From contig CM074804.1 in NCBI GenBank assembly GCA_037447605.1, forward strand, positions 3,821,909 through 3,885,908: a stretch of DNA of 64,000 bases, in the 5' to 3' direction. Below, one piece after another: positions 1 through 48,565 of this stretch. Below the pieces are notes generated by a model. It did no database searches and had not been told where the DNA came from. It saw only the letters and a list, made by a program, of their open reading frames with translations. Position 1 is the stretch's first letter. Every line of letters begins with the position of its first letter. A program made the translations under genes and the position numbers. This DNA is from Zygnema circumcarinatum SAG 698-1b. Its lineage: Eukaryota; Plantae; Zygnematophyceae.

Positions 1-3000
1 AATGCATCGGTCAACGTACGAGAATCTCCTTCTTGCTCTGCACCCGCACTGGCTCCCGCTTCTCGTTCAGTTCAAACCGCAGCTCCGCACTGCTCAACTG
101 CAGGCCTCCGCTCTCCTCCCTTCTCTCTCGCAACTCCTGCTCATTAGAGCCACCCCCCTTCCATGCATTTCAGTCAGATGAGTCAGATTTTGAGGGCAGG
201 GGTGGCAGCCTGCAGCAAAGGGCAAAGGCTAAGTACATACCACAGTGACATAACATTATAGCGCGCAGCAAAAAAAATCTTTCTACTTTATGAACCGTCC
301 TGCTTAAGCAGCATTTGAGAACCATGATAGGAGACCACTGTACCTCAACTATATCACAGTCACGAGGTATAAACTTATATTCACCTGTCTTCCTAGGACA
401 GAGTAGATAAGGATCTTTCTTCAACACCAATCCCTATCTGCAAAAGTTAGTAACTTTGGAGTAATAATCGAACAATGGGCGACCGTGAGCATTAGGGGGA
501 TAGCGATACCTGGGCAAATGCAGCGAGCACAGTCAAATTGTTTTTTACAAACAGCACTTCAGAATCACCTCCCGGCAGCTGCCATTCAGCGGGCAGTTTC
601 TGGTTGTCCAGAATCATTTGAGCTTGCTCATAGACCATCTGCAAAACAGCTAGCGAACAGGGAGTGCAAACGTACCGGACTGTGAATGAGAGGATTTCAG
701 TATGCCACTTTTTGCTGAGCTCATCTGCTAAAAGGACGAGGTGCTAAAAAGTACTAACAGCTTGCCATCACAGACCACATATGCTGACCAATCTTCAGAA
801 TCTAGGATCATTCTGCGAGGTTTCAGTTTCAAAGCCTGTCTACATTCTGATCACAGCACTGCTCTACGCGTTTTCCCAAGCGACAACAGCTCTATATGTG
901 TACAAGCAATAAAGCGACGAGTGACATCTGCACGTTCCCCTGCACCTGGCCAGAGGAGCAGTATGAAAGCTGTGCCCCTATCCCCCTGTGCTCTCTCTAT
1001 GCACCTGATAGCGCGAGAGGATGACCGTGCGGCCGAAGCAGGTCGAAGCGACGCGGAAGCTTCGTTCCGGGTCCACCGTCCAGAGCACGCTGACCGCGAG
1101 GCGCTCTTCGCCGCCGCGCAGAGAACAGAGGTCCTCGCTGCACGGCCCGCCGGACCATTCAGGGGGGGGGGGCAGCTCACTACGGGAGAGAGGAAAGTAT
1201 TTGAGGAGTATTTGAGGTCACATGTGCAGCTTTTTTGGACATGATGATGCATGATGACTTGGCATCATCATCACCTGAGAAGTTCTGGAAGCATGTTCAG
1301 GCGTCGATCCACGAGGTACACAGTTGTGGATCTAGACCGAGCCTCCAAGTCCAGCAGACTGTCGGCCTTTACAAAGTACGATACGTCTGCTATGTGCACG
1401 CCCACCTGACTCAACCCACGCCGCATTTCAGACAAATAACAAAACAAGAAAAGCAACTTTCCATTCTAAACGTGCATCCGTAGGCCGTAAATCCTCCATC
1501 GTAGCAAACGTTGGAGAAGAAGGTAAGCACCTCTATCAGGCCGTTTGGAAGAAAGTGCAGGGAAAGGGCATCGTCCACATCTTTGCTGCCTGGAGGATCA
1601 ATACTGCAAGCCCATCCCAAAGCAAGTCGCAAATCAGTCCAAAAAAGTTGTTAAAGGTCAATTGTCCTTTGGGATGCCTTGCGGCATTGCCTCACTCTCT
1701 GTGAAATTCCATATCCCCACTTAATTGAAAGGCTGCTGTTGGACAACCTGCACGTAAAAAGAAGTTTGCGTAGATCACGGCGTGCTCGCAGTTCTTCCTG
1801 CGGAATTCTCCATGGGGCCTCCGTGGGAAGCTCATTCAGAGCTCTGCCCCCAAACAACAACCCATGTTCAAACCAGCTCTCAAGAATGTCCGTTGATTTT
1901 CAAAACTGGCCAAAGAACAGAGTCCGAAATTGCAGAAGTACGCTTCAAAAAACTCCCGTCTGTTTGTTTGTTTCCCTTTCAGTAAATTCCTCAACTGCTC
2001 CAACTGCCAAATAGCGGGTCCCATATTATACTCGCCGCCTTGTGCAGATCTCAACCGGCACAGTGCATGCAATCCTTGCAACCCTCTCACCCGGCGGTGA
2101 ACGGCGAGTCGATGATCCCATTTTCCACCAGTACGGCGCTGCACTCCGCGCCAAGATCCCCCATGGGGCCCAGAACGCGCACCACGTGGCCATGCGGCAC
2201 TGCGGAGGCGCGCTCCCAGCCGTCGATGCGCAGGACAAAGCGCTGGCCGAATAGGCGCGCGCCTTGGCGCGTGCGAACGCGGACCTGGGCGCTCGGGGAG
2301 GCTCCGTCAGCAACGCACAGGAAGCATTGGCAGCTCAAACAGGTTTCTGTAACAATGTTCAGCTGTAAGCGCGAGGCTACTCAGAATCTGGAAGGCTAAA
2401 CTTGAAGTGACTGCAACTAGGTCATTTGCTACTGCAAAGTTCCCTGTCAGGGTCCGAACTGAGGCAAAGAACGCAAGCATTTCAGCAATGTTTGGGGATA
2501 AGACTGCAAAGAAAGTTGAGGGCCATGAACAAACGGGTCTGTCAATGGCACTGCCTACCATCCCAGATAGATGTGTAGATAATGTATCTCTAAATCGATA
2601 AACACCTGCAGAGGTATTGTTTCGGCTTTACCAAGGGGATGCAACGGTCCATTGGGATGCACAGCAACGCCTCCTGCCTGCAAGAGCAATTGTACCACCA
2701 TGCGGGAAACAACACAAATTAGATCGATTGTGCAGGATGACGCCTGTTCAGACGATTCTCTTTCGGAATTCACAGCATCAGGCATTTTTCTAGAGAGACT
2801 GTCCTCTCTCCTCCGGAACTGCTTCTGGAGGCCACCGCCTTACCGGAGCGATTCTCGTTCTGACAATCTCTGTTCATCGTCCTCCCGCAAACACGCTACA
2901 TAATCTCTCTGTGCTCGCTGTATCACTCTCACTATCTCCCCTGTTGGAACCTTTTGTTCGTGCAGATTTTGATCAGCCTTTAGGAAGTCTTCCTCAGCAT

Positions 3001-6000
3001 CAGCCTCTTCCCACAGGTCCCACGCATCATCCGAGGGAGCTCCCCCAGCGGCGCTGCTCTCCTCCCCCGCCACCTCTCCCTCCGCTCTATTGCCTCTATC
3101 TTTATTTGCTCCCCTCGCCCTCCACTGCGCGGGGGGAAGCACCCGCACCGCTACCACATCTCCCGCAATCGCACGGTTTTGAAGAGTTCGATCGGGTACA
3201 AAGACTTCGCCAAGAGCTGCCTCGCCATGGTTGCTGGAAACACCAGGAAAAAAGGGAGTCATATACGCCATACATTCGTTGGAGACCGTGCTTACCGGTT
3301 CATCCTGGAGAGGAAATACCTCGTTTTTTTAAAACAAATGTGACCTTCCTTTGACATGAGAGTAATGCCAACCCCCGTCTAGCTGCAAAGCTAACCACCA
3401 AGATAGTTGCAAACAGTTTCCTCCATTGTCTTTAAAAAAAAATAATAATATGTGAGGCTTTCTGTAGAAACAAGAAAAGGCTGCCTTTCCTTCAACCTTC
3501 GAGAGAACATACCTCCAACGGACAAACCCTTCCAAGGGAGAGTGGGAAGAGACATGAAATATACCGATTTGAAGAGCGCCCTCTCTCACTCCCTCATCCA
3601 CAGCATGGCCTGCGAGAGTCCAACAAAAAAGGCTCCGCATCAGCAGAGCTGCATCTCCCAAAAACGCGAGCACGTACACACGGAAGATAGCTTCAGTCCG
3701 CCTTTCCAGAAGGTTAAAACATACTCGTCCATACATTTCAAAATTCAAACGAATCGGGACTTCAAAGATAGAAGATCTTCCTCTCGAATCAGCAGACATA
3801 TTGATTTTCCTAGAGCCTTAGATGCTTATCCGTGATATGTCAAATGCAGGAGACGAACCTGGAAGGTGCTCCTTGTACAGCCCTCCGCTTTTGCGTACTT
3901 CTGCAGGAGCCAAAGCTTCCTCAGCAGCGGCAGCCTCCTGAGCTTGAATCTGCCAGCCCAAGTAAAGCGTCTGTAACTGCTTGAGACGCAATAAATCAGG
4001 TCAAAGGAAACGTGCCATTCTTCCCTGCATTTTCACCGCGACATTCAGACATCACAAGAAGAAGGCAGTTGGGATACAAGGAGCAGCAGTGTCAAGAGGA
4101 AAATCAGAAGAGAAGAACGATTGCCTGACTGCAGGAAGTCCACTTCTTGTACGATTCTAAGTTATCAAACTACAATTTCGATCGTAGGAGAAGCTTCTGC
4201 AGATTGCAACCGTACATCTAGCAGGCCTCACAAGAATATAGCACAGAAGCCACATAATGAAGCGGGCAGACTCCGGTACAAGTGGACTGAATTTTGGCCG
4301 AGTGGCCCCCACCAGCGAGTCATGGAGCTCCATCACGCTGCGGTCCTCGCCCCAATATCGTTGAAAGTATTGGGAACTGCCCATCAACTGCGAAGCCATG
4401 CGACCAGTAACAATACATGAACCCCATCTGAAACCTATACACGAGTTGCGATATTTCTTAAGCTGAAACGGAATGGTTTGTACCCAAAGTCTGCCATGAA
4501 ACCTCCACAGTACCAACAAATTACCTTCACTCCGGTAGGCAAACAGTCCTGTGATTGGGTTGGTTCCAAGTTAAGCGCAGCCATAGGCTCGAGAAGGCCA
4601 TTTAGCTCTCCCTCAATGGACGTCTTAGGCGGCTCATATTCATATTCATTAGACACGATAACAATCTCCGCCTTCCCATTCAAATGTCTTGCAAACCATT
4701 CAGCAGCAACCTGTAGTTCTGCCACAAAGCCCTCCAAAACAGCATAGTCAGAGTTACCAACGTGAGAAGAACAGCCTATAGCTCCAAAAGCAACTGCAGC
4801 CAGTGAGTCATATGAATAAGGCCAACATGTTTAGACAATTGACAGTTCGGAAAGTTCGCCTTGCTATCAATTACGAACATTCATCGGGCCTGATGAGTTA
4901 GCAAGCACCTACTCTGTTGCCTGTAAAACAACTTTCCCTTATCACCACTTGCTGCTACGCCCTTATTCTTTGTAAAAGATTTAGTAAAGCCCTTCAGGTG
5001 CTCTCGTTGCATTCGCCAAATGCCGGCATGGTGTTGGTCGTCAAAGAAGAGATTTTGCCTTCGAGGGTCACTATACAAAGCCCTGCAAGGAAGTAGGGTA
5101 ATGAAGTGTCTCAGGAAGTCACGAAAAATAAAACAAGCAAAGAACTGAGTCGTCGTTCGTGGTACTTTTAAGCACTCCGACGATATGTCAGGACAGAGAA
5201 TTAGGGGTCAACGTCCAACTCCAGAGACCAGTGATTTGAAATGCCTAGCGGCAAAGGGAGAGCAGGCCACAACCTTTCATCATTAGCTCATTGACATGCG
5301 CTTGACACGGATGGACTATGGGAGTTCTACGTTTTTTTAATTTTTTTGTGGGGTAAACTCCATTAATGATTCAAACACCAGCTATCTACTCATTCATGCC
5401 AGTGCTTTTCCATTTGCTTTAAGCTTCAGCAAAGTTATCAACAGGCTAGGCCTTACCTGAGCCTGCTGTAGGTACGCTGGTTGCCTCTTTCATGAACCTA
5501 ACCACAGCAAATCCTGCAATGGTGAGAGGAATAAACTTCTTTCCTACATTTCTTCGACTCCCGATCACCAGCCAGATTCATCAAAGAGACACAGGTCAAA
5601 AGGAGGAGGGGACTGTTGCAGCTCAAATGACTAACAGCTTCATTTGCGATATTGACAAGGCCTACATCACTCTTTATCTCTCCCACCCTATCTACCTAGA
5701 ATCCCCTCTCCCCCATCCTCACTCTCTATCCCTTCCCGTACTCCATGCCCCCCTCACCCCCTGCCCCTCGTCTCGCATGCCCACTTTCTCCCCTCAACTC
5801 CCAATCAACCTGTCCCTCCTCGCCCCCTCGCCCCTTCCATTCTCCCTTTTTCCTCCCGTCGCCTTTCCTTTTCATCCCCCTCCCTCCCACCCCCCTTACC
5901 CCTGTCCCTCCCACCTCCCCCAACACCCGCCGCCTCCTCTCTTCCTTCCCTCCTTGGTTTCAACTCCCCTTCCCAATTTCCCCCCCTCTCAGCCCTCCCC

Positions 6001-6814
6001 CCTTTCCCTGTCCCCCTGCTCCCTCCTCCCTCCTCCTTCACCCTCCACCCTCCCGCTGGCTTTACAAATGGCCATAGCAGCATGGAACACGGTAGGAACA
6101 AAGTTGAGCAATACTTACATCTTGCACAACTGATGCCAGGTAAATGACGCCTATCAATTGGGGAAGCTCCAGAAGTTCCAAATAGTCCAAAATGGCTTTC
6201 GCATCGGGAATCTACATACATAACAGGAGGAGAAGTTCCAATTGTCGAATGTTTTCTTGACAATGACAGAAGCAAGGGTAAACAGTCTCATGGACAAATT
6301 GTCGATCAAACAGATAAAATCTGCTTGACTTTTGGAGCTGACCACTCCAGTGTAGCTTTGGGAGGCCTACACCCCGCGATGTTCTAAAGGGGAAATGGAC
6401 TAAAACCGCAAGCCCTCTCTCCTCATAGTTCTCATGCTCATACGGAAAGAGAAGGAAAGCAAAAAGGGCAATATAAAAACAGGAAGGGAATGAACAGGGA
6501 GCGGAGAAAAGAAAGTAGAAGCACAAACTAGAAAGGGAATTCCACTCGAAGAAATAAAAATACGTGGGCAAAGGACGGACCGAGAAAAAGGGAAGAAAAA
6601 AAGGGAGAGAATCAAAGGCGAAATCAAGCAGCGGTACAACCTCAAATGCCAGCTGCATTACCAGGTAATGGGATGTTGCCGGAAGTCGAGGTCTCTCTTG
6701 AGAGCATATGTCGCAGATTGCAGAGCTGCAACCTAAGTCATCCCTCAGGTAATGTTCATGGACGAGAGCGACAATGCTTCCAGTTCTCTTCCTCGTTTTG
6801 GCTTCCCTTGTAGC
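1..6814 (-). CDS. DIS3L: DIS3/RRP44-family exosome-associated exoribonuclease (CR3-PIN-CSD-RNB), DIS3L1-like; about 17 exons seen; 3' end continues beyond position 1; true start codon probably in an upstream exon within about 6860-7200 (not resolved)
   Basis: Spliced translation gives CR3 [20 protein letters not shown]; PIN start SHYL|[25 protein letters not shown]; [18 protein letters not shown]...[17 protein letters not shown]; [27 protein letters not shown]; RNB catalytic TC|[26 protein letters not shown]...[17 protein letters not shown]|SEDLCSL...[11 protein letters not shown]|MVYEQAQ. Exons are bounded by GT-AG. Confidence 0.93.
5690..6055. repeat. Low-complexity C/T-rich tract (G/A-rich on the sense strand) inside a DIS3L intron
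   Basis: Direct reading: about 360 bp almost entirely of C and T runs on the + strand. Confidence 0.85.
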
Positions 6815-8067
6815 CTGTGCGAACAGTAATGCGGCAATGAAGCAAGTGCACATCAACTATATTATTAGTCGCAGAAAACCCTGATTAGAAAGGCAACAAA
6901 TTCCCTGCATTTCCGTGCAAGCCTTGTTTCGGTCCCGACCCAAGGAGGAGAGGCACCGCTCGAAGATAATCACACACCTCTTGATCATTGCAAGAGCACC
7001 AAAACTCGGCTTCGTAAAAAGGACATCGTCGTGACTACTAAACACCTCCCTTCCCTGGGCTGCATGGGGGGCACGCTTGAGCAGACTCTTGCCCGGTTTT
7101 GCACAATAGTCTTTCTTTTGCTTCTGATAGCACAAATCGCAATTCAAATCACTCAAACGCTTGTCTATGCAGCTGGCATCAGCTGAAATTGTCAAAAAAT
7201 GGCTGATTCGTCATTAAGTCACGTTTCAAAATGACAACTGTTACTTTTCAGCTATGTTTTGTGCAATTTTTAATTGTTGATGTGAGGGGCTCTTCAAGAT
7301 GAACTCATGCCCAATAGAATGCGATGTAAATCTTAAAGAGTTTAACCCGTGCTATATACACTCTCTAAAGAGCAATTTCAGAGGAATTCTTTTGTCAACA
7401 CCTTCAATGAAGTTCCTTGTGAAGCAATTCCTCTGTCTGGACTTTATCTGATTTATGAGTTTGTTTGTCCGAGAGAAAGTGCAAAGTACAGAGTGTAGAA
7501 CGTTCCATTGTCCGATGATATGTTCAATTTTTCTGATGTGAAAGCACAAGACGTTTTTATAGTTCAAATATGATATCATATTCTAAAACGTCACGAAATA
7601 TTAGCTTAATTTTTCGCAAACACTATTTTGCAATGCTCAAACTTTGGCAAATATTGATATTGGAGATGTTCCGGTGGAAGGCCTCCGCGTCAATGCTGAA
7701 CAAAAGACTATCTTCAAGCGATTAAACAACATTAACAGCATTATCCTGAACTTATGCGATACGCTTTGCTTCTGAAGCTTATTTTTTCGAATGGAAATCC
7801 TTGGAACGCACATATTTGCCAACAATTCCTGCCATGTCGAAGAAAATGCCACCCAGCTCCTCCCTCACAGAGACGAGAAGTAGCCGCGCTTCTCCCTTGC
7901 AGAACGATGCTCCACAGAGAGGATAGATAGGAAGCAGTTGAGCTCCGAGTGCTAACGATGAATAGAAGGCATCTTAAGCGAAACAGAGAAGTACTGTTGA
8001 CGGAGCGTCAAGGACAGCGATGAAGTGAAAAGCGAAGGGCAAGCCTGCCGGGGAGGCCTTATTCAGC

Positions 8068-11000
8068 ATGGGAAATGGCCGGGAAAGTCTGCTTTTGGAG
8101 AAGCATCGTGAGTATATCAAGGGGTTAGACAAGGTGAGATGCAGTGCTGCGTTGCAGCAGGTGTCTGTTTGTATCGATGTATTGCCAGATGAGTTGTTTG
8201 GTTGAAAATTCTGTGTAGTTACTCGTCTTGAAACTACGAGGAAAGATTGACCGATTTCATGGCGTAAAGGTTAAGTTCAAATTTTCTTGAAAAGGTAGTG
8301 AATGCCCTAATATCGGTCATCTCTTCGATTTATGCCGATGTGATACAATTGACTACAATAGATAATCAACCTTGCTACTAATTGACAAGCACAGCAATTT
8401 GAATATGCCCGTTAGAGGTCAATCGCCTGAAGCATTCAATCAACCTCAAGTAAAAGCATAGATGCTGCTTTCTTGCTACTAAGCTGGGAGTACATGATAT
8501 GCAAGAAATGTATAAGGAAAGACACAGCTGATAGAATGAACAAGCATGCAGGAAGATTGAGACGATCTGTATCTCTTAGGTTGTAGACTATTTTCAATCG
8601 TTTGCAACTGGTAGTTGACAAATCGAAACCTAGAAACACAACGTAATCTGGTCTGCCGTATGCGATTGTTTCCGCAACCACCTCGATTCTAAGATTCACA
8701 TGAAACGAATATTTAGTTGGCAGTGCTGCGCCTTTGTAAATGAAACTAATATGGAAACTGGATTGTGGAAAAATTGTAAGCGTAAAAGCTGGTTGAATGG
8801 CTTAGCTGGCCGGGGTTGTCCGAAGAGATGCTTGAATGCAAGTTTTGCTTTGAACATTTCTGTTTACGATGGGAGATAGCTAGCAGCTGCCTGTGAAAAC
8901 AGAACATTTTTCAGGGGCTGGCTGCATTGTTTGAACCTGATGCAGAAAACAGAAGTGGTGGAATATGTGATGACGGAACATCTCAGAATGAGTGGTGCCT
9001 ATTGGGGATTAACGGCCATGGCTCTCATGGACAGCCTGGAAGAAATGGAGGAAAGTCGAGTGATTGACTGGGTACTGCGTTGCAGACATTCAAATGGTGC
9101 GATTCCGATTTACGAAAATTAGTCTACAGTTGGACTTCTTGTGGGATGCACGTAACATCTTGGCTTGAGTGTAAAGGGTTTCGTAAGTCTCGGTACACCT
9201 GCAAGTGATAAAGCCGGAAGTGCGGATTGTGATGTGTAAACTGGTTCGAGTTTCAGCATTGGTTAATCCGGTCATGGCAATTTTTTTGTGGGGTTGTTTA
9301 ACTCTGGAGCATCTCTGAAGCTGCCAAACGGCCGTAAACGAAGTAACTGAGAGCGGACATGCCTTGGCAGGTGGTTTCAGTGGGAACATAAATCATGACC
9401 CCCATATCTTGTATACACTAAGTGCAGTCCAGATTTTGGCTTTATTTGACAAGTTGCATCTTATAGACTCGGACGAGATCGCATCATGTATCCTATTCAA
9501 ACCCCACAAGTTTAGCACCATCCGCACTGAGCCATTGAGTCACGTTTTTGAGTGTGACTGCACGTTGTGGTACTGTTAATTGGCATGGAAACTGTCTCTG
9601 TTGGCACTGCTAGAATCGTTTTTTGTTTTTTTCAAGTCAGGGTTATTTCTATTCCATGAACCTGCTAGTGTACTTTCCAGCCCTTGTTTAACATTATGAT
9701 GAACTAGCCCTTCAAAATGAAGCTTTCGCCACTGATCACAAAGCTTCAGTCGCATTTTGTTCTAACTTTTTCCTTGCAATTTTATCTCCTCTCTATGACA
9801 TATGCAGAATGCAATGGGATTCGGCCGTGATCTTTTTGGTTGTTTCATTCAGAACGCAGCATTCCTTAACTTGTTACTGACAGATATAGCTTCTCTCCAG
9901 CAGGATGACGGGTCCTTTGCGGGCGACGAATGGGGTGAGATCGACACAAGGTGTGTTTGTCGTCATTGCTTGCAGTTCTGTCAGCTTTGAACCCTCTCCC
10001 CAAAGTCGATGTATGATATGAGGAGGATTGTTCAGCGAGTGAATTATTGGACTTCTAGACCGGAAAGGGCAGTTTGCATCAGGATGCTGCTGACCAGTTC
10101 AGCGGTTAGACTGCTCAACCTCTGGAATCGTGTATTTGTGAGCCGTTTTGCTGGCGGATGTCATGCAGGGAGCTTTCTAGCCCATTTCATTTTTATGTTG
10201 ACCTTTGCCGAAATATTGTAAAATCCTGTGCACAGGTTCTCCTATTGTGCAATCTCGTGCCTGGCTCTAATTGATAGACTCGACCGCATCAACTTGAAGC
10301 GGGCCACAGACTTCATTGCAAGCTGCAAGAATTTCGATGGCGGTTTTGGGTCAGTCCCAGGAGGTGAATCACATGCAGGGCAAAGTATGTTTTTTTCTCC
10401 TTTTCAAACTCCTTCCCCTTCTGTCTTTCTCTCTCCGTCCCTTCCGTTTCCCCATCTTGTTCTTCCACTCCCCTTTCTAATTTCCTGCTTCCTGTTCGTG
10501 CTTGTATTTGTGTGTTCCTTCGCCACTGGCTCTTGTGTCAGGTTTCTGTTTGATGGTCATCGCAGTTACGTTCAATCTTTATCCACTGCTTTGTAAGGTT
10601 AATGCGGCCAGAAGATGTAGATGTGGATTGCAGTGTCTTGACTGCGGCTATATTTAGTGGGCTTATACTGCAAATGCAGAATGGAAGCTCACTCTAGCTG
10701 TGTTCAGAGAGCAGAACTAAGTGCGCCCATTACAGCATTCGACGGAGCCTGTACGGGTTCACCTCTATGTCACGTCTGTGTCGGAGGGTGCGCACATGTT
10801 GTTGCAATGCTATGTATTGGAGTGGACTATCAGGTGGTTTATCTCTCGTATTACATGTCCTTTGGAGCAGAGAAAGTTGTTGCCCGGAGTCCATGACATT
10901 TATGTTCTGTCCATAAGAGTTGCTCGCGAACGAACCTTGTAATGCGCTGAGTTTCAGCATTTATTGAGGAGAAGGCCAGACTGCTTTAGTTGCTTCAGTT

Positions 11001-12459
11001 CTTTCAAAGGTAGTACTGGAATAGTTTCGTTCTGTGCTCCTGCATGAACCAACTCACTTCTAACCTTTAAGAAACGAATGGACAAGTCCATACTTCTGTC
11101 TGTATTCTCAACCACCCTGTATGCGTTGCTTGGATTGCTTTCTGTGTCTGGGAACAAGCCAGTCTTCTGCTGCGTGGGAGCGCTGGCCATAGCCGGAGCC
11201 CTTCACCACGTGGACCACGACTTGTTGGGTTGGTGGCTGGCGGAGCGCCAAGTCCCTGATGGAGGACTGAACGGACGGCCGGAGAAAAAGCCCGATGTGA
11301 GCTCTGTTCTGCATTGGAATCAGCTTGGGCACTTTCTGCAGTGAGACCAGTGAAGAGCTGAAGTGAGCACTATCCTGTTTGAGACCTGCGAGAATCTTGA
11401 TGGAAGCACTTTCAAGCATCTGCTGCCAGCTGCGCATTTTTCTGTACATATCACTTTCCGGCATCGCATCTGCTCTGTTCTGGCCCTTTCGGCTTGGACT
11501 TCTGTGGGAGGTTTCTCCGCATAGTGGTAGTCCGGGTTGAGGACCAGATAGCAGGAAGACACTGTCATTCTCTCTTAAGCCCAGCTGGCAGTCCTTCAGT
11601 TATTAATCAATCTCATTTTAGTGGCATGTTTTCATGTTTTACAAATTGAATGGCTGAGTCGGGTTAATCATCCTGGTGCTTGTATCACCAGCATGGTCTA
11701 TTTAAGCTCTGGTTGGTCAAGCTTGTTTTTATGAAATAACTAGAATATGCAGCCCTCAAGTATCTGGGGCATGCAAACCTGATGCTGAAAGCTCACCTTG
11801 TGTTTGCAGGTTTGCTACTCGTGGTGGGTGCTTTCTTGTCTCTCTATATTGGATCGATTACATTGGATAGACAACACTCGCCTGCAGCACTTTATCTTGG
11901 ACTGCCAGGTGTGCGGCCCCACTTGTGCCTCGTCTCCACTTTTCCTCCCTTGTTTTGAGCTCTCTTATGCAAGATGCTACCTTGTTTGCTCGAGAGTAGA
12001 CCTTGTATACAAGGCATGCAGAGCAACCGTATGCGCCAATTCTCACGGAAGCCTTGTGGCGGATGGCAGGATGAAGAACGTGGAGGGATTTCGGACAGGC
12101 CAGATGACATGGTGGACGTCTTCCACACCTTCTTTGGAATAGCAGGCGAGCTTCGTGATCGCCAAACTCTCTAATCAGATGCTTCCCCAATAACGCAATG
12201 CGAGAAAAAATTTCATCCATAATGCAGCACATCGATTGACACCATACGTAACTCGTCAACAGTTTTAGCTTTCCGACAAGCGCTACAGCACTCCCCTTTA
12301 TTGTTGCTGCACTGCTGGTCTGACCCTGCCTCTGCTGCCACAGGTCTCGCTCTATTGGGCCACCCGGCGCTCAAGCCAGTGGACCCCGCCTTCGCTCTCC
12401 CTGTGCACGTTATCAATCGCATCTTTCGGCAGAGGGCTGCGGCGTCAGACAAGAGCTAA
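8068..12459 (+). CDS. RABGGTB: Rab geranylgeranyltransferase (GGTase-II) beta subunit, 9 exons
   Basis: [22 protein letters not shown]|[25 protein letters not shown]...|[23 protein letters not shown]...|[23 protein letters not shown]|FSYCAISCL...[15 protein letters not shown]|FCCVGALAI...[22 protein letters not shown]|VCYSWWVLS...|[25 protein letters not shown]|[21 protein letters not shown]...*. These are prenyltransferase repeats. Confidence 0.97.
9488..9883 (+). other. Probable U12-type (minor spliceosome) GT-AG intron in RABGGTB
   Basis: Donor GTATCCTAT at 9488; branch point TTCCTTAAC at 9862-9870, 13 nt before the AG at 9882-9883; splicing restores S-Y-I-A-S-L-Q. Confidence 0.75.
12146..12343 (+). 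other. GC-AG intron (last intron of RABGGTB)
   Basis: Exon ends GGA ATA GCA G|GCGAGC; acceptor CACAG|GT CTC GCT; splicing gives the conserved FGIAGLALL. Confidence 0.75.
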
Positions 12460-13604: not shown

Positions 13605-15719
13605 TTACTCCGACTTCTCGTCAGGTTGCAGAGAGCCGATCCCCAGCATGGCTCCCATTTGAACCCCCACTCCATTCTCTCCACCACTTGATAGCGGATG
13701 GAATGCTGAGGGGTGGAAAGGCTGCCCAAGACCATAGTGACCATCTATGCCGCCTGTTGGCATGGAGGGCGCAAACCCCCTGTTCGCAGCGTCTCCCTGA
13801 GTCCTCCCCTGCGCTGCCAGGGAGGGGCTAGATGCTCCACCTTGTCCTGAAGTCGCGTGCTGAGAAGGGCTCCGGTTTTCGCTTTGAGCTTTCATCTGCC
13901 CGCTGCCTTCAGATTGCCCATCACTGTCTCCGTCCTGGCTGCCATCTTTAGGTTTCGTGTTTAAGAAACGACCCCCGCAGCCTCGTGCTCTACGAAGTGC
14001 GTGTTGATGTCGTGACTCGTGTAAATACGGCTGGGCATGACGAAGAAATAAAAAGAGCATTGAGGAGAAGTGTATCTGCCTCTAAAGTACTGTTACTGTA
14101 GCAACCAATACAATCGGCTCACTGATAAAGAAAGACGACAGAAATTGTGCACTACTAATCGACAACTTTATTCACTGATAAATCACCATAAGGTCCTCCT
14201 TGGACTTTTCCATACACAGACACAGGATGTGTGAATATCAGAGTAGCAGAAGTTGATGATAGATTCAAAAGGAGATTATAACTTGCTTTCCCTTGAAAAA
14301 AAATTGGATGGAGAAAACTTCAGAGGGAACACAGTGCTGCATCGGCAATATGTCGTCAATCAAGTGCGGGTGATTTAAAAGCCAAGAATGCTGCCACACA
14401 AACACTTCGTGAATACTTTATAAAACAGGCAATCGACCAACAGATGAGGTCATAACTGACACAACATTGCGGCGTGCAGGCTCACCTTCCTGCTCTTGAT
14501 CAATCGATTTTCTGACTCTGCTTTGGCCCGAGATTGCCGCCGTCGAAGAATCCCGTGATACTGCTTAGCATTGACATATACCGGCTCCTCCTCCATTATT
14601 TCTGTAGGAAGTGGCATGCGAGCTTGCTGCACCCCAACAAGATGAGGAGGCATCTGCAGTTCCAACAATAGTGTACCAAGAGCAGAGTTTGAAATGAGTC
14701 TGGAATCCATGAGATAACTGCTACTGCTACTGCTCTCATTCGTCAACTTCCACAGGTGGATGACCGCGAGTTGCAAGGCTGTCACAATGTCGCAGACAAC
14801 CCCAACTCGTTCAGAAAAAGGACCAAGATAGGAATCAAACAAAATCTTTCAATGAGGACTCACCAAAGCTTGTGTTCCATATGCCATGGCGAAGTTGCCA
14901 TAATAGGAGTCATAGGGATAGGCCGCCCTCTGCAGAAAGTATTGACCCGCAAGGAGAGTGCTGAACTTAGCTACAGTTAACTTTGCCAACATGCACTTTT
15001 CCATATTCGGCCAAGCACATCACTAGCTTCAATAGGACACGGATAGTTGTGGCTTTACATTGCTCTATCTGCACCAGTGCAAGGAACCCTAAAAGGAGGA
15101 GAAAATCACTCGCATACCAGGGCTGAATTTAATTCCAATTGCGTCCGCGGTAGAATGTATTCTGCACCCATGGTCATGCCCGGTGCAGGAGCAACTTGCT
15201 GGTGCTGATGGTCTTCCTGAACTCCAGTTGTCTCATAGCCTGCGAAGTTAACAAATATCCCTTGACTTCAGCTGGAACAGCTAATCAGTCTAACCCAACT
15301 TTCAACTTTTGTTCCAATACCTCTATTCAGAGCCAAAGATGCAAAGTCCCCCTGAATGCTGAGCATGGCTATCAAAATGCGCGCTCAGGCTCAACGAATG
15401 ATGCAAATAACTCGAGCAGCGTAGGTGTCATTAAGAACCCCGGGGAGCCAGCTCTGCCCAGCATTCAGATGAGACTCTAACAGGAAATTCCTCCGCGCAC
15501 TCCGAGAGACATGAGATTAGGGTGGGACATGGCACATTGAAACCCTGACTACTGAGTTAGGGCACAACATGAGCATGAGCAAGGATCTCCATCCAAGTGG
15601 ATGAACGCTTCACTCATAACCCCACACACAAACCCTAAAGAAAATATAACCGTTTCTGACGGAAAAATTCATGTGTTCTACGCTAACAGTGGCAACAGCG
15701 GACCTGATTGTGTCGCCAT
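13605..15719 (-). CDS. NF-YA: Nuclear transcription factor Y subunit A (CCAAT-binding factor B/HAP2 family), 5 coding exons; long 5' leader extending to about 16750
   Basis: MATQSG|YETTG...[15 protein letters not shown]|[22 protein letters not shown]|[56 protein letters not shown]|[26 protein letters not shown]: canonical NF-YA A1/A2 helices. Confidence 0.96.
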
Positions 15720-15849
15720 GGAAACAGCGCAGCTGCTCTCCCCTCGCAATCTTGGAATGCCGTCCGCGATAGTCTGAGCAGCGCCAGCGGGATGTAGCGT
15801 CTACAGGAGGCCGAGTTCAAGGTAGTCCCTCGACACTATCGAAATTAGG

Positions 15850-16330
15850 GTTACAGTAAGCGGAACGGAAGGGGTAGGAAAGAGGAGAAAAGGAATGGAG
15901 AACGTCAGACTGAGGAGTCGAGAAAAAGACCGGAGAAAGATAGGAGAGGGGGGGAGAGGAGAAAGGGGAAGTGGAAAGGAAGTGAAGGGAAAACAAGGAA
16001 AGGGAAGGGAAGTGACGGGAAGGGAAGGGAAAAGGAGGAGAGGGGAGGAAGGACAAGGACGGAAACGGAGAGAAAGTTGAGGGAAGGGGCCGGCGGAGGT
16101 TAGGGGATGGCAAAGGGCGGAGGTGTGATGGGGAGTGGGGAGGGGGGGGGGGAGGGGGGCGTGCGTTGGTAAGAAGAAAGAGAAGGGGCTGGAAAAAGAA
16201 AGAGGAGCGGCTAACAGTGAATGGAGAGTATATGAAGAAAAGAGTAGAAAGAGTGTAGGCGAAGGCAGGGAAGGAATGGACGGAAGAGAAATCGAGGGAA
16301 GCAATGGGCCGACAAGGAAGCGCGCAGCGG
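15850..16330. repeat. G/A-rich low-complexity tract (C/T-rich on the NF-YA sense strand) in the NF-YA leader
   Basis: Direct reading; further (GGGA)n and (GGCA)n microsatellites at 16465-16560 and 16655-16693. Confidence 0.8.
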
Positions 16331-17589
16331 GCAGACAGCAGCCCGGGAGCGAACAAAGAACGAGACTAGCGGAGGAGGCGGCGGGATGAAAAGCCGACGA
16401 GTCGTCGCGGGAGGCCAAGTGAAGCGCGCGGACCCCGCTGCCAGACGGTCAAAACGCGCGGCGGGACAGGCAGGCAGGCAGGCATACAATAAAAGAAGGA
16501 AGCGCGAGGCAGGGCAGCGCCTATTGCCTGCCTGCCTGCCACCTGCTGCCTGCTGCCTGCTGCCTGCGAAGGGAGGAGGGCGCGGGAGGGAGGAGAGGGG
16601 AAGGAAGGGGAGGGGCAACGCAGCGCAGCGCCCTGGGGGGGTGCGGTCTCGGGGGGGAGGGAGGGAGGGAGGGAGGGAGGGAGGGAGGGAGGGAGCTGCC
16701 TGGCTCGTCTCCGTACGCCCGTACTGTGCCGTACGTAGTGGTACGGTCGATCCCGGGACTTGGAAGCGCAAGCGCGCATTGTGCCCTGGCGCCCTCGCTC
16801 CGACTTTCAAACTCCGAAGTTCAAACTTGAAAGTTTCAAAAAGCTGCGGCCTGGAACCTGGAGGGACGCGCGCACACGCTGCAAAGGGAGGGAGGGAGGG
16901 AGGGAAGGAGGGAGGGAGGGAGGGGGGCGGGGCGCGCGGCCGCACGGGTCGGTCTGAATGTGCAGGGAGGGAACCAAGGCATGTGCGGGACTGCTGGTTT
17001 AATAAAAAGGAGGAAAATGGCATTGAACTCACGATACTCGCGAGTACTGTACTCGGACTGCGGTGGCGTATGGACTGTGGGGATTTGGATGGAGGGTAGC
17101 CGACCGTGGCTCATGTCATGGCTGCACGGTTTAGGGTTAAGGGTTTGGCCATGTTGGGTTTATAGGTTTCAGATGGTTTGAGGGGCTTCTGCTACCTTGG
17201 TGTGTCGTGCCTTCTGTGAGACAATGTTGTTAGACTCGCGGCAATGTTTTTCCATGGTCTTTAAGAACAACACGAGTCAGAATGGTTTGACGCGCCGTAG
17301 TGTTATTTACTCGCAGACCCAACTTTTGCTTTATGTGCAAATGTCGCATACATTCTTAATCGCACCAGCTCTGCGCTTCAGCAACTTTTCATTTACAAGG
17401 GAGGAAGCTGGAGTCTCCTCCAAGATTCCGTTGCTGCTTGCGTGCTGTTTAAGGCTGAACCAACATAAGGGGCCTCTAGGCCAACTTGAATCTCAAGATA
17501 AACAATTCTAAAAAGACAATGTACGCCAGTAACTCAACTAATTAGGATACGCGAACGATTATTGGTAAAATCTGTGAGAGCGCGTGGTT

Positions 17590-24673: not shown

Positions 24674-25697
24674 GATTCAGTTCCCTAAAAAATACTATGG
24701 GTGATGTCACGACGTGTCACGACGATGAGACAATGGCGTCACATGTCGTCACGTGACATCACGTAAAAACCGGCGAGTGGCTGTCGCAAGATTCGCAACA
24801 CCAACGGTCCCTACGGTCATACTGTACAGTACCGGATTCCGTACATACTCAAACTTGGTTTCAAATGTTTTGGCGAATTTTATCGGTTAAAAATACCGGG
24901 CTTTAAACCAGAATTTAAAAATTGAAAAGTTTAAAGCTTCACAAGTGCGGCCATATCCCGAGGCGTTCGTGTCCGTTTCCCCTCAGGGCGGGCGGCCGCC
25001 GCCACAACAGGCTGGCTGGCGCTGCGCCGGACACGCGGCTCGTACAGGCCGTACAGTATGACCGTACCGACCGTTGCCGCTCTCGGGATCCACTCTACTC
25101 CTGCTGACAGTTTCTTGCTCAATCATATCGGGACACGTGTTTTCTTGTACGGACATTGCCGCGATGCCGAGGTCAATATCCGCCACGTGGTCCTCGGGTT
25201 ACTGGATAACTCCCCGAACCCTCTCTCGGCTGTAGCTTTCAACGAGGTTAATTTTGGCATGTTGCATAGAGAAGGAAGTGGATGCGATGTCGGTGGAGTC
25301 CCCGCAGACCCTTGAATCCTGCAGTTCGTTTGGTAGACCCGCCGATGGGTGGTGGATCTGAGCTCTGAAATATCTGTTCAAGACGGGTTATCTTTTGTCC
25401 CGAGCGGCTCGACCCGTCAGTGTCCCGTCAAGGCGGTACCGCGCGCTCGGTCGCTCGTAAAAACGCTTTTTGATCTCCCACTCAGGGACTGTGGGGGAGG
25501 GCATTAGGGAGGGCGGGGGCCGGGCCGCCGTGGCTGCTCGCAAGCAGAGGTCGTGCCAAAGTTATTCCTCTTCTTATAATAAGCTGCGGGGCTGTTGCCC
25601 CTGCTCGCCGCCATGGCCATGGGAGGGGAATAGGAGGTCTCAGAGGACAGTGTTCTCAGAAATAAGAGGAAAAACAGTGCTTTTGACGGTAGTTGCT

Positions 25698-28600
25698 ATG
25701 GCTCCGCGGCCGCGGGTAGAGGAGCTTGATGGCAGTCTCGAAACCACTGTAAAATCGCGGGGGGGCTTTCCTGGCTCCAATGGTGCTATGAGACTGCTCA
25801 TTCAGTTGAAGCGGGGCTCAGATAACTCGTCATTACAATCGAAGTTAGACAGGCGGCATTTTCTCCGAGGCCCCTTTGGACTTTTCACAATGCCTTGTGG
25901 AGTCCCAGCCGTCGTTGCCGTGATCAGCCTTCTACTTCTAGGACTGCTTGCAAGCAGTCATTCAATGCAAGATTTTCTTGAGTCGCAAGGGCAAGTTCGC
26001 AATGCTACAACACAAGGCGTAAAGGACCATCAAAAGAACAGGATGAGGTCAAGCTTTGGACTCGTTTCAACACCTTTGAATGGTGCATCATCTCGGAATA
26101 GTGCGCTGCTTGAAAAGCTTGAAGGGACGAATGAGCAACCTGTCAGGGACGAGATGCGGCCTTTCCGTTTGGAAGGCGAATCTCGAGGCAAGGACGAAAT
26201 GGACGGCAGTTCGGGGAGGTTTGAAGATGATGAAGTGGACATGAGCGGTAAGGCAGCTGCGACTGGTTCTAAGCTGGATGGAAGTGACAGACCGGATCCT
26301 GGAAGCGTAGATGCAATATCTGATATATTGGAGGCAGAAAACGGGAGTTGGGACAATTTCACACAGAAAGGAGATTTCGGTCGTATGCGTGATGCACTCA
26401 TTGCCGTCGATGGGAAGCTTCGCGTTCAAAATGTCTCACATGGAAAGGAACGAGCAACAAAATTAACAGCTTTTAAGCGAGCGTTGTCAGCCATTGTTGG
26501 AATAAAGTCATCGTCAGACGAGGATGACTTTGGAGTCAAGTGCGACACACCGGCCATAGTTAGCGTGGATCCGCCAGATGCTCAGATTTTAAGGGTATAC
26601 ATGTATGATTTGCCCCTGGACTTCAATTGGGAAATGCTGAGCGCCAAGGGGCGGCCCACCATGGGCGTGTTTGGTCCCGGCTTGTTTGAGACCGACTCGT
26701 TTCCTTCCCACAGTGACAGAAGATGGAAATGGGGCGGATGTCCGGGAAACCATTCAGCACAAGTCCCTGTTTATGCGGGAAATCCCTCTGTGAGTCAAAC
26801 ACCCTTCGACTTTCTGGAGTGCAGTAGTTTGTATCGAAGTCACATTATGTCCTTCGCACACATGTCTTTTCAAGAAATGTCAAAACTTTATCCTCTGCTG
26901 TCCTCGTCAACGCTTGAAAGTGCAAGAAATGCATTTCCTCGAATAGGAACGCGCATCCTCGAATAGAAAGGCACGTCTTTGACGTTTTCCTATGCTGGGA
27001 TACTATGTGTAGTTTGTTAAGGGCACGCCATATTGCATTCGCACTGCAAGTTTATTGAACTTTATTTGTGCTTTAGCGTTCGCTACTTGTTTGCTGCCGA
27101 CGAAAGCATCCTCATTTGCTTTACTTTTGGATAATCTACTTGAAAATTCATTTTGCCCAGTGGTCCGGGTATTGCATATCTGTTGTGCGGGTGAAGTTGA
27201 CTTCATTTGTCTTACGCACTTGATGCAAGACGGAAGAACAAAAAGTGAGCAGTAGACGTCGTCTGGTTTGCCTTTCTCATTTTGTTTTCCTTGCCTCAGC
27301 GTCTGGAATAGCTTCAGGACTTGTTCTTCTACATAGTCTGCATGATAACTATCGTTGGCTATTCGCTGGACTTTTTGGCCATTTCTCCAAAACGGTCTTT
27401 GGCTAACTTGCTCATCTATTCGGCATGTTACAGGCGCAACAGCACAGTGTGGCATATTACATGGTGCTTTCCCTATTGCAAGGCTTGCCTTCTATTCGCC
27501 GAGTGGCCAATCCTGAGGAAGCTCAACTATTCTTTGTGCCCTATTTTTCGTCCATAAGCTACAATAAATATTTGAGAAAAGAAGACAGCCGGGATGTGTA
27601 AGTCTCCGAAATTTCGAGTCTAGTTGAAAGAATGTTCAGTCTGAGCCAGAGAAATGTCGAGCGTCAAGCCGGCATCCTCTGCTGCTGGGGATAGGGACCA
27701 GAGCAAATAGCGATCAGCTATTAGCCGCGTAGAGCCACTTGAACACTCACCTCCTCTGCACATGAGTCAGCTTCTCATACTAATAGAATTCCTAGTCAGA
27801 CATGTCATTGTTACGCATGCCTTTTGGCATGTCTGTCTACATGGACGCTGCAGATGGAGCTTCCTCTTTCAGCATATTCCTGCAAACACACATAAACATA
27901 CTGTTTTTCCTGCTGATGGCTGTTGTGTAGCCTGTCTGCACAGGTTGTTACAGGAACAGCTAGTTGCATGGTTGGAAAAGCAGGAGCCATGGCAGCGGTC
28001 TAAGGGTCGAGACCATGTGATTGTGGCTCACCACCCGAATGCTATGGAACACTGCATGAGCAAGCTGCAAAATGCCGTCTTTGTAGTTTCTGATTTTTCA
28101 AGACCTCGCAGTAAGGTACGTTGACAATATTTTGCTTGTAAATTCGGCGGACGTGAGTTGGTTAGGAGAGAAACTTCTATGCGGCTCATTTTCTCGCCCG
28201 CTGGTTGCAATCTTCACACAGGGACTTCATCTGATGCCCAGCTTGGCTGTCTCTATCACGCTTGTGTTGGTCATTTAATAGAATATTAACAAAAAACAGG
28301 CAAAGAAAGAGAATCTGCATTGTGGTTCACCTCATTTAGTGACAGATGGTGATCTTCAATGTTTCTGGTACACTTGATACATTGCATTTGGCGGATGCTC
28401 AAAATATGCCTACGGTTATTGGAAAGTAAATAAAAATCTCATTCCATTTCTTGAATTAAAAAATCGAATTGGCTTGTGGTCATTGATTTGCAGCAATGAA
28501 TTTTTGGGTGCAGCATGCCGGCTGGCAATCGATATGCCAGCTGGCAGTCAGCTTGTGTTCATGTCCTTCTATTTTATTGAACACAGATCATTTCCTAGTG

Positions 28601-30030
28601 CAAGTCAGACTGCAGAAATAGATGCTCCCGTGCGGGTGTTGATGGAAGAGCGAGTGGTTTGGCCATTGCTTGGCAGGGCTCTTATTACGAAAAGGACGTT
28701 GTAGCACCCTACAAAGCTTTTGTGTCTCCTTTCTGGAAGGATAGCTCCAACAGCACTACTAGCTGGAATGCACGACCAACACTGCTCTTCTTTCAGGGTG
28801 GTTTTAAGCGCAAGAGGGTAAGTTGTAAATCAGCATGGTGAAAATGAAGTTGCCGGTTGTTTGGCTTGTCGAGGGAGTGACCGGTGCTAAGTGTGTTGTG
28901 AACAAGTCTATTCAAGAGCTGATGAGGACCGTCGTTGCCTGTCCCCTATCCATTGCCGATTGCCGTATGCAGGGTGGCTTTATTCGCGAGAAGCTCAAGG
29001 AGGTTCTGAATGGGAAGGAGGGAGTAACGCTTGTGGAAAGCAGACCAAGCCAAAGTTCAATTCAAGGGGCTGCTCTTGGCTTTCAGCAATCTAAATTTTG
29101 CCTCATGCCTGCAGGTAAACAATATTTCTTTGGGTGCTTCTGCCCTTGAATTTTAGAACGAGGGCTTTATTCTAGCATCCATTCTAGCCTTCCCACAGAC
29201 CATAGTTGTTTGGCTTGTATGGGCCGTCAGCTCGCCTTGTACTTCCTGTACTTTGTTTTGGGAAAAATTGGCATTGTTTTGCAGCGTTCCGCAACTCAGG
29301 AGGTAAAGCAGCATAAGCCATGTTTTGGACATACTATTCTGGCGTCAATGTTGAGGTCGTACTGTTCTCCGGGGCTTTCTAGATCACGACCGGCCATCTT
29401 GGTTTCCTCCTTCAATGACCTTCGCCCTGTTTTATTACAAAAATGATACAATAGTGGAGTATTTTCTTAACAACTTGGTGTCTGTTGCTGCAGGTGATAC
29501 CCCGTCATCTTGTCGACTCTTCGATACCATCCTTAGTCACTGTGTCCCAGTGGTGGTGAGTCAGGCGCTGGAGTTGCCGTATGAGGATATCCTGGACTAC
29601 TCCTCATTTGCAATTTTCGTGCCGACATATAAGGCCCTCACGCCTGGCTACTTGCTGAATGTGCTGAGGAACATCACTAGGGAGCAATGGGAAGTTATGC
29701 ACCAGAAATTGCTGAAGGTATGGGCCCTAATAGAACAGCTATATGTATAGGGCTCATATGCGTTCCTCATTCTTGATTTGAGGAAATTGGTGAAAGCATA
29801 TTTATATGGCTGAGCTAAAAACCGTCTTCACTTGTGCGTGGCTGGCGCATGGTTGGATGCAGGTGAAACATTTCTTTCAATATGAGCATCCTGCTGTAGC
29901 GGGTGGTGCTGAAGAGATGATTTGGCAGGCAGTGGCTCGAAAGCTTAAGAAGAACAAACCAGCAGATTATCGAGAGAAGCGGCTCCAGCTTCAAGAACGC
30001 GAGAAAGACCCTTCATCCAATTATTTGTAG
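25698..30030 (+). CDS. Exostosin-family glycosyltransferase (GT47), ARAD/arabinosyltransferase-like type II membrane protein, 7 exons; start codon not certain
   Basis: TM segment VPAVVAVISLLLLGLLAS; LRVYMYDLP; QQHSVAYYMVLSLL...EEAQLFFVPYFSSISYNK; WQRSKGRDHVIVAHHPNAM; KDVVAPYK; RPTLLFFQG; SKFCLMPA|GDTPSSCRLFDTILSHCVPVVVSQALELPYEDILDYSSF; MIWQAVARK. Confidence 0.93.
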
Positions 30031-45018: not shown

Positions 45019-46002
45019 GGCGTCAAGGCCTGCTCCGTGCTCAGCCCAACTTCAAATCAGGCCCCTTAGGTTTTAAAGATATTTCTTGGAGCTCCTTCAG
45101 CGGGGCCGACAGCTTCACAGTGAAACCCTCCCCTGAACGGAGAGGGCAGCCACTCGCCCTCCGCAGAGCGCTGGAGCTCCACCCATCCTCCAGAAGCCTT
45201 GTTCCCCTTGTTCCCCTTGTCCCTCCTCATCCGAAGACTTCAAACTCTCAGTCAGCTCATAGGGAACACAGCCTGTCTCCATAGTCTAACGAGACAAAAG
45301 GTCTGCTGTAGACTCTCCAAAGTTTTTGCCCATGTTCTCAGTCTGTAGGATAACATGAGATACCTGTATTCCTTGTGAACTCGGAACTGAATTGAAGCAA
45401 GTTATGTCATGAACTAAATATATTGGGAAAAAAATAAATGGAATATTTCTCCATCTCAACAAACGTGCAATGAGAGAGTGACAGGTAGCTGGGACGTTGC
45501 GGCCTGCAATTACCCGGCATTGTGGGGGAAGGGGAGGAAGTGGGAGAGAGAGAGAGGGGGGAAGAGAAGGATAAGAAGATAAAGGAGCGGAGATATGCTT
45601 GGGTGGGAGAGGGTGAGGGCGAGAGGTAGAAGGCAACCGGATTGGAGGGGGTGAGATGGAGAAGCGAAGCCCGGTCGTTCCATTACCGCAAAATCAAACA
45701 GGTTAAAGAAGAAAGGAATTCCTCATTTCTCGCTTAACTTCAAGGACTTTCTAACTTGTTAAGCAAGAGAGTAAAGCTTTCTGGCTGGTGCAAAGCCATC
45801 TCGGATAACTGCCTTCTGTCTAGTCTGATTGCGCGAAAGTAAAATATCTTTTAAAACCCGATCCTCAAAAGAAAAAGAGAAATTAATTTCTACAGTTTTG
45901 GCTCAATACGAATTTTATACGAACCCAGTTGAGCATCGAACAATCAACTACCAGTCGTGTTCATTTAGATTCCCTTGCATCCGCGGTACAACAATAAAAT
46001 CT

Positions 46003-47728: not shown

Positions 47729-48565
47729 CTACATCATCCGCAACCTCTCCTGCAAAGCCAAAGGGACTTCAACGACTACCTCTCGAGGGACCAGGCCCCG
47801 CCGCACAAGTTCTTCAGACTCTATCCGCGGATTCTCCTCCACTGCTAGCTTCAAAGCCCTTGCTATATCAGTGACGTCCTGAATGTCCAAAACCCATTCA
47901 TTCACCCATACCCTAATAAGCTCTGGCGGTATTCCAACCTGAATGCTCCTGTTCGGCAATTTTTCGAGCGATGGAGATCTCTCCGGATCCCATTGCACCT
48001 TGACAGCCCCTCTCTCCTCCTTGCTACTAGATCTCACGCCGGAGGTCGTAAACTCCGCCCGCTCCAGCAGCCCTAGAAAATGGCAGCGCTTCATTCTGAT
48101 AGCCAGAATTCGGGCCTGTCCCGCGTCCTTAAAGGAGTAGCCGGAGCGGTACATCATCCAGCACCAGCTGGGCTTGATCCAAGTCATGCGCTTCAGACTG
48201 AAGGCGGGCGAGGCGTCCAGCCTCTGCCTGGCTACCGCCGCCTCCCCTATCTCCGCCGAGTACGCCTGGTACACCGTCACGCTCTCGCCGTCGCACAGCG
48301 CGCGGACCTGCCACACTCCTCAAACTTAAAATCACGCAGGATGGAGCCTCATGGTGGCAACTCTAAACAAATGGTGCCGTCCGTTCACAAGACACTTCGA
48401 AAGCTAATGATTCAACTGACTCCTGAAAATACAGAAATGCTTCTTCAACCAGGACATGCTTGCCACGTGGCACATAGCAAATTTCTGGCTCATCAAACAT
48501 GCAGCAATGCAGCAGGCTGAGAGCACCTGTCGCCCTGCCTCCCTGCCGGGGCCGAGACCAGCCAT
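47729..48565 (-). CDS. DUF4291 family protein (function unknown); 2 exons: 48565-48527 and 48307-47729
   Basis: MAGLGPGREAGRQ|VRALCDGESVTVYQAYSAEIG...RMTWIKPSWCWMMYRSGYSFKD...QWDPERS...RSIQVGI...EWVLDIQDVT. The VYQAY and RMTW motifs are the hallmark of DUF4291. The splice joins RQ|VRA in frame. Confidence 0.9.

Follow-up and report, generated by a model that had tools for sequence, protein, structure and literature searches.

The DIS3L1 nuclease of the cytoplasmic exosome has so far been presented as an animal protein. It has been described as found only in metazoa (PMC8097288), animals have been noted to possess this second DIS3 paralogue (PMC8894942), and Arabidopsis has only RRP44A and SOV (PMC3820695); a 2026 preprint on complex duplications handles DIS3 at the level of the orthogroup only. 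The gene considered here lies on a stretch of 64,000 nucleotides (nt) from the streptophyte green alga Zygnema circumcarinatum SAG 698-1b (assembly GCA_037447605.1, contig CM074804.1, forward-strand positions 3,821,909 to 3,885,908), which is referred to below as the window and numbered from its first letter. Very probably the gene represents the 5' two-thirds of an intact and transcribed DIS3L1 orthologue, a member of a family that dates from early eukaryotes and seems to have been lost in flowering plants.

The assignment to DIS3L1 rests on the phylogenetic tree, because the raw identities of the protein to DIS3L1 and to DIS3 differ little. An exhaustive HMMER search with the exon encoding the second cold-shock domain (CSD2) gave 686 matches, and these were compared by local BLAST with a model of 749 amino acids (aa) that a script assembled from the exons in the window. 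The same model served for the trees, and the profile and structure-database searches were made exon by exon. The closest match by local BLAST was a transcript fragment of 531 aa (P0001) at 52% identity (57-62% over the aligned columns of the trees), followed by three full-length proteins of 1157-1259 aa at 40-43%, with animal proteins of about 1049 aa at 31-33%. Nearest among the full-length proteins are those of Riccia, Marchantia and Selaginella that bear the name DIS3-like exonuclease 1, together with proteins from Ginkgo, Cryptomeria and Mesotaenium. Identity of the model to land-plant proteins of the DIS3L1 type is 45-49% and to DIS3L2 21%, whereas the gap between animal DIS3L1 (37%) and DIS3 (33-34%) is narrow.

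Trees were built from MAFFT alignments with RNase R and DIS3L2 as outgroups, one quickly under LG+G4 with 79 rows and one more carefully under LG+C20+F+G4 with posterior mean site frequencies (PMSF), 50 rows and 970 columns, and the two have the same topology. In the careful tree the window protein falls into a clade with the DIS3L1 proteins of fish, amphioxus and a brittle star (support 99/97, and 97 by the Shimodaira-Hasegawa-like approximate likelihood-ratio test, SH-aLRT, in the 79-row tree). The DIS3/RRP44 clade (99/96) comprises animal DIS3, fungal Dis3 and plant RRP44A, the last of these including sequences from Closterium (a zygnematophyte), Marchantia paleacea (a liverwort), Ceratodon, Diphasiastrum and Arachis. 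All green-lineage members of the DIS3L1 clade group together (100/100), the streptophytes among them as a subgroup (100/98); there the partner of the window protein is P0001 (100/100), and the two are sister to the land-plant DIS3L1 proteins (97/89).

These relationships bear directly on a first alternative, namely that the gene is a fast-evolving copy of canonical RRP44A/DIS3 which lost its PIN residues independently and came to look like DIS3L1 by convergence. Such a copy would share the CR3 block and the domain order that are common to DIS3, as the window protein does, and an identity to DIS3 only a few points under that to animal DIS3L1 would also be expected of it. It is at odds with the reciprocal monophyly of DIS3 and DIS3L1, which is highly supported, and with the position of zygnematophyte and liverwort RRP44A within the DIS3 clade. 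More specifically, approximately unbiased (AU) tests rejected a union of the window pair with plant RRP44A (about 337 log-likelihood units worse, p-AU 4e-43) as well as a union of the whole green DIS3L1 group with plant RRP44A (also about 337 units worse, p-AU 0.004). The presence of the DIS3L1 type in a glaucophyte, Amoebozoa, Apusozoa and Heterolobosea is likewise contrary to it, and this explanation is considered very improbable. A preliminary description, made by a model from the letters of the DNA, had proposed that the protein matches DIS3L1 better than DIS3 and had called for a phylogeny to check it; the protein lies outside the plant RRP44A/DIS3 clade, and the tree is joined in this by the ranking of structure-database matches for the PIN, CSD1 and CSD2 exons given below.

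The preferred reading, that of a true DIS3L1 orthologue, raises the matter of how the gene came to be in an alga. Members of the clade are not confined to animals and green plants; they include a glaucophyte, chlorophytes, Amoebozoa, an apusozoan and a heterolobosean, and the non-plant members are Thecamonas (P0143), Mastigamoeba (P0117), Balamuthia (P0099 and P0252), Willaertia (P0132), Ichthyophonus, a choanoflagellate and animals. The group termed "amoebozoan RNII-like" and left unassigned in PMC8097288 may consist of the same proteins as the amoebozoan, heterolobosean and apusozoan members found here. Among plants and algae, the proteins of Selaginella moellendorffii (RefSeq XP_024518625), Marchantia polymorpha, Riccia sorocarpa, R. 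fluitans, Pleodorina and Chlorella ohadii are already labelled "DIS3-like exonuclease 1", and orthologues without that name occur in Calypogeia, Ginkgo, Cryptomeria, Taxus, Mesotaenium, Mesostigma, Cyanophora and a pedinophyte. With the Ginkgo protein as query, all matches above 45% identity came from gymnosperms, liverworts, Selaginella or unnamed transcripts, and the sole angiosperm match was a protein of the RRP44A type. No angiosperm member of DIS3L1 was returned by the word-indexed searches, though angiosperm RRP44A proteins came up in them. Flowering plants and fungi both seem to have lost the family.

The branching order within the DIS3L1 clade follows the species tree from the glaucophyte through chlorophytes, streptophyte algae, liverworts and the lycophyte to gymnosperms, and this agreement favors vertical inheritance, from a duplication early in eukaryote history, over lateral transfer. 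Acquisition from an animal or another non-plant eukaryote, or a contaminant in the assembly, might be suspected since papers call DIS3L1 animal-specific. Neither sits well with a single green group (100/100) in species-tree order in which the window protein is sister to land plants and not placed among animals, nor with intron-rich neighboring genes of plant type (a prenyltransferase beta subunit, NF-YA and a GT47 exostosin), nor with the recovery of the locus under the same species label in three studies, and a foreign origin is hardly credible. The preliminary description had offered both an ancient origin with loss in flowering plants and lateral transfer; the former agrees with the species-tree order and the protist members, and the latter is not upheld.

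The domain order of the predicted protein is CR3, PIN-like domain, CSD1, CSD2 and the first half of RNB. In the alignment the metal-binding motif of RNB, D-x5-D-x-D-D, is complete at aa 557-566 with all four aspartates, as had been proposed, and these residues are encoded by exon 14, which is supported by contigs. All of the peptides that had been quoted are present in exons joined by real transcripts: HYLRDDLGC begins at aa 29 of the model, YLIPDAK at aa 58, VVQDVHERG at aa 87 and IVIVSNE at aa 179, and three further segments of 21, 10 and 11 residues begin at aa 477, 525 and 556, respectively. Pfam recognized OB_Dis3 (CSD2, E 3e-13) and RNB, the latter on exons 14 and 15 with a best E of 2e-17. 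The PIN exons taken singly had no Pfam match, including to PIN_4, and a PIN_4 match is present in RRP44A rows but absent in full-length plant and animal DIS3L1 rows. When the exon that starts the PIN-like domain (exon 3) was compared with all chains in the PDB, the sole match was human DIS3L1 (9g8n_M, E 0.003); exon 6 alone, with the C-terminal end of this domain, gave only chance matches in the PDB. The top PDB match of the CSD1 exon was DIS3L1 (E 2e-4), aligned to its residues 267-356, and the CSD2 exon matched DIS3L1 (5e-12) ahead of human DIS3 (3e-10), yeast Rrp44 (2e-7) and DIS3L2 (0.009). Both the CR3 block and the PIN blocks can be aligned to animal DIS3L1 column for column. The earlier caution that the CR3 region (HYLRDDLGC) is DIS3-like does not hold, as EHYLRDD-x-C-x5-C-x2-C is common to the DIS3 and DIS3L1 rows of the alignment; CR3 is non-discriminating because both clades carry the motif.

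The PIN domains of the two clades differ in their acidic sites. In the PIN alignment nearly all DIS3 rows carry D-TNV, E, NDRND and a final D, whereas NDRND is missing in every row of the DIS3L1 clade. In the window protein site 1 is the D of IPD-AKA, with no TNV after it, site 2 is the D of VVQD (E in DIS3) and site 4 is the E of VSNE (D in DIS3); at the place of NDRND (site 3) there is no acid, and a lineage-specific insert at this place precedes LFYRQQK. The absence of an NDRND-type motif and the reading VSNE at the last site are as the preliminary description had them. Relatives have lost more: animal DIS3L1 rows also lack the acid of site 2 (S, H or A instead), and land-plant DIS3L1 rows also lack that of site 4 (QP, TG or TA) and in some cases that of site 1 (N), although most green-lineage members have E at site 2. 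The window protein thus keeps three of the four acidic positions, more than any land-plant relative. Work in yeast and human has established that a PIN domain deprived of one of its acids has no endonuclease activity, and an inactive PIN domain with a docking role is therefore the likely state. The earlier proposal of a probably dead PIN agrees with the absence of site 3, and as to inactivity it is tempered by the acids at sites 1, 2 and 4.

This pattern also bears on a further alternative, in which the gene is a true DIS3L1 orthologue with a role unlike that in animals: a PIN endonuclease working through three acids, a nuclear enzyme, or one independent of the exosome. The D at site 2 and E at site 4 of the window protein and the E at site 2 of most green members, set against S, H or A in animals, are compatible with such a role. 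Land-plant members have C-terminal extensions of 100-200 aa without an animal counterpart, and plant Exo9 is itself catalytically active, so that the context of the enzyme differs (PMC8894942). Weighed against these features are the absence of the third PIN acid from all members, with the effect that a single such loss has in yeast, and the conservation of the exosome-docking parts, namely CR3 and the PIN scaffold. A divergent role of this kind is judged unlikely.

Several points weigh against the reading of the gene as a DIS3L1 orthologue that resembles the animal enzyme. The margin of identity between animal DIS3L1 and DIS3 is narrow, as noted above, and the second half of RNB and the S1 domain would fall beyond window position 1. 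The AU tests were run in IQ-TREE under LG+F+G4 and not under the mixture model, and the free and constrained searches ended early, at about 90-100 iterations, after which the best trees were compared. Many rows of the trees have a deviant amino-acid composition, and the DIS3L2 outgroup sits on a long branch. The PIN domain may retain residual endonuclease activity through its three acids, and the localization, exosome binding and activity ascribed to plant and algal members are carried over from the animal protein.

The gene runs on the minus strand from about 8066 downward and past window position 1, with 18 exons in the window (Table 1). Read evidence came from contigs of four public runs with the same species label, placed on window positions 1301-7300, and spliced copies of the gene were present in runs X1, X2 and X4, which belong to three different studies. 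A single X1 contig of 2436 nt skips 14 introns, and 14 exon junctions are fixed by the spliced contigs of the three studies; all 14 skipped introns read CT..AC on the plus strand, that is, GT..AG on the strand of the gene. Twenty-nine contig letters beyond 6814 map to 7812-7840 and include the ATG, which lies at 7835-7833 inside the upstream exon that ends at 7812. The start codon was set there because, going upstream in the same frame, a stop is met 46 codons away before any other ATG. Below 1405 the exons were set not from reads but from AG and GT sites and from tblastn matches of the nearest full-length homologues; four further exons were defined in this way, counting exon 15, whose upper joint comes from contigs. 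Ambiguous joints were moved to canonical splice sites before the exons were joined. AG acceptors and GT donors are present throughout the set of 18 exons, and the joined frame of 749 aa is free of stops. Because the terminal exon in the window finishes at a GTACGT donor, the gene extends past the window edge, and the window carries about two-thirds of the coding sequence, the 5' part. The extent of 1-6814 assigned in the preliminary description was too short; it missed the first exon with the ATG, and the gene starts further 5' and continues past position 1.

Table 1. Exons of the DIS3L1 gene in the window, listed in the order of transcription, with the parts of the protein encoded and the evidence for each.
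Exon	Encoded part	Window positions	Strand	Evidence
1	5' untranslated region and first 8 codons	7812..8066 (upper end approximate)	-	Contig loose end 7812-7840; X2 loose end of 255 letters; GT after 7812
2	Basic N-terminal stretch and CR3 (EHYLRDD, then C-x5-C-x2-C), aa 9-59	6662..6814	-	Joints 6211/6662 and 6814/7812; alignment
3	Start of PIN-like domain, acid site 1 (IPD) and site 2 (VVQD)	6119..6211	-	Contig joints; PDB; alignment
4	PIN-like domain (includes a segment of 13 residues)	5457..5497	-	Joints 5081/5456 and 5495/6117, shifted to GT-AG
5	PIN-like domain, lineage-specific insert at the NDRND place, no acid site 3	4913..5082	-	Contig joints; alignment
6	End of PIN-like domain with site 4 (IVIVSNE), then linker	4525..4718	-	Contig joints; alignment
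7	Linker	4313..4387	-	Contig joints
8	Linker (YKEHLP)	3859..3949	-	Contig joints; aligns with DIS3L1 rows
9	Start of CSD1	3513..3609	-	Contig joints
10	CSD1 and acidic low-complexity insert	2844..3233	-	Contig joints; best PDB match DIS3L1, E 2e-4
11	CSD1-CSD2 link	2632..2677	-	Contig joints
12	CSD2 (OB_Dis3)	2091..2284	-	Pfam PF17849, E 3e-13; PDB DIS3L1
13	CSD2-RNB link (a segment of 10 residues, later RRDLR)	1748..1843	-	Contig joints
14	RNB active-site motif (10 residues, four Asp)	1531..1603	-	Contig joints; Pfam RNB; alignment
15	RNB (includes a segment of 10 residues)	1275..1405	-	Upper joint from contigs; lower joint from GT donor and homology; Pfam RNB, E 2e-17
16	RNB	1005..1137	-	tblastn with Riccia, Selaginella and amphioxus DIS3L1; AG/GT sites, open frame
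17	RNB	510..638	-	tblastn; AG/GT sites
18	RNB, ends at GTACGT donor	20..136	-	tblastn; splice sites

Some further features of transcription and sequence were observed at the locus. A minor alternative joint in X2, 3233-3565, would shorten exon 9 by 52 nt and shift the frame, and the resulting isoform is probably unproductive. At 2364-2966 one X2 contig has a joint that reads GT..AG on the plus strand, opposite to the gene; the joint occurs in that run alone and may reflect a spliced transcript antisense to exons 10-12. The intron of 621 nt between exons 3 and 4 contains a strongly C/T-rich tract on the plus strand (5500-6100, GC skew -0.63), which in some frames gives long Pro/Ser/Leu or Gly/Arg/Glu pseudo-open reading frames; tracts of this kind are also present at about 15800-17000, 45300-45600 and 61600-62400. 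Rfam had no match in the window.

Upstream of the DIS3L1 gene and on the opposite strand, less than 900 base pairs from its exon 1, lies a prenyltransferase beta-subunit gene (8931-12150, plus strand; Pfam Prenyltrans on two exons), and the region of about 8066-8930 is probably a bidirectional promoter for the two genes. Beyond these are an NF-YA (CBFB_NFYA) gene at 13605-14842 (minus), a GT47 exostosin gene at 25470-29750 (plus) whose long N-terminal exon has no match, and an AAA ATPase exon of ORC1/CDC6-like appearance at 40146-40493 (plus). Because the NF-YA, GT47 exostosin and AAA ATPase neighbors are of plant type, they support a green-lineage origin of the contig. An intronless open reading frame of 195 aa at 47729-48316 (minus) consists of an entire DUF4291 domain (Pfam E 2e-59).

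By analogy with the animal enzyme, the protein would be a processive 3'-5' hydrolytic exoribonuclease whose CR3 and degenerate PIN domain serve mainly to dock it under the Exo9 barrel, the nine-subunit core of the exosome. Its place would probably be the cytoplasm, alongside SKI7 and the SKI complex, and the endonuclease activity of canonical DIS3/RRP44A would be absent from it. The family would have arisen in early eukaryotes and persisted in liverworts, lycophytes, gymnosperms and many algae. A wider proposal is more tentative, and its chances are put at somewhat under even: non-flowering green plants and algae may operate a cytoplasmic exosome with a dedicated DIS3L1 of early-eukaryotic origin, which was lost in flowering plants and possibly in mosses as decay was rewired to the phosphorolytic Exo9 core, RRP44A or SOV, and the PIN domain of this alga may be partly active.

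The gene and its relatives make the split between DIS3 and DIS3L1 far older than the view of an animal innovation that reviews and a phylogenetic study have put forward. Streptophyte algae, liverworts, a lycophyte and gymnosperms still have DIS3L1. Studies of the plant exosome have relied on Arabidopsis, in which RRP44A and SOV are the only such enzymes (PMC3820695), and the present distribution raises the questions of which hydrolytic enzyme serves the exosome of the plant cytoplasm and what took the place of DIS3L1 in flowering plants. Marchantia, a genetic model, carries the gene. Searches for literature on DIS3L in Marchantia returned nothing, and the papers that join DIS3L with Selaginella were unrelated, judging by their titles and abstracts. 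The suggestion that the plant exosome variant is undescribed stands in part: the proteins of Selaginella, Marchantia and Riccia already bear the DIS3L1 name in RefSeq and UniProt, and no paper describing them was found. Plant DIS3L1 is visible in automatic database names and undescribed in papers as far as these were searched. As the gene family is ordinary and its plant members are automatically named, the finding corrects an accepted view and offers a starting point for further work, but no new type of system.

One of the nearest known systems is the animal DIS3L1 of the cytoplasmic exosome, represented by the human protein in PDB entries 9g8m-9g8p. It shares with the window protein the order of CR3, degenerate PIN, CSD1, CSD2 and RNB, an intact set of RNB aspartates, the lack of NDRND and of a Pfam PIN_4 match, and membership of the same clade. 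It differs in its identity of about 37%, in having S, H or A rather than D at site 2, and in lacking the lineage-specific inserts that the window protein has in PIN and CSD1. The DIS3L1 proteins of land plants and algae (Marchantia, Riccia, Selaginella, Ginkgo, Cryptomeria, Taxus and Mesotaenium) are direct orthologues at 45-54% identity in the 100/98 clade and have the RNB motif of 10 residues in common with the window protein. In land plants site 4, and in some also site 1, has been lost, whereas the window protein keeps both, and the land-plant proteins have the C-terminal extensions absent in animals.

The other known systems stand further away. DIS3, Rrp44 and Arabidopsis RRP44A have CR3, CSD1, CSD2, RNB and the exosome-docking architecture in common with the window protein, but differ in their full set of PIN acids (D-TNV, NDRND), in their Pfam PIN_4 match and in forming a separate clade. 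DIS3L2, known in Arabidopsis as SOV (RRP44B), is like the window protein an RNB exoribonuclease with cold-shock domains, but it lacks CR3 and PIN, is directed to poly(U) and independent of the exosome, and at 21% identity lies outside both the DIS3 and the DIS3L1 clades.

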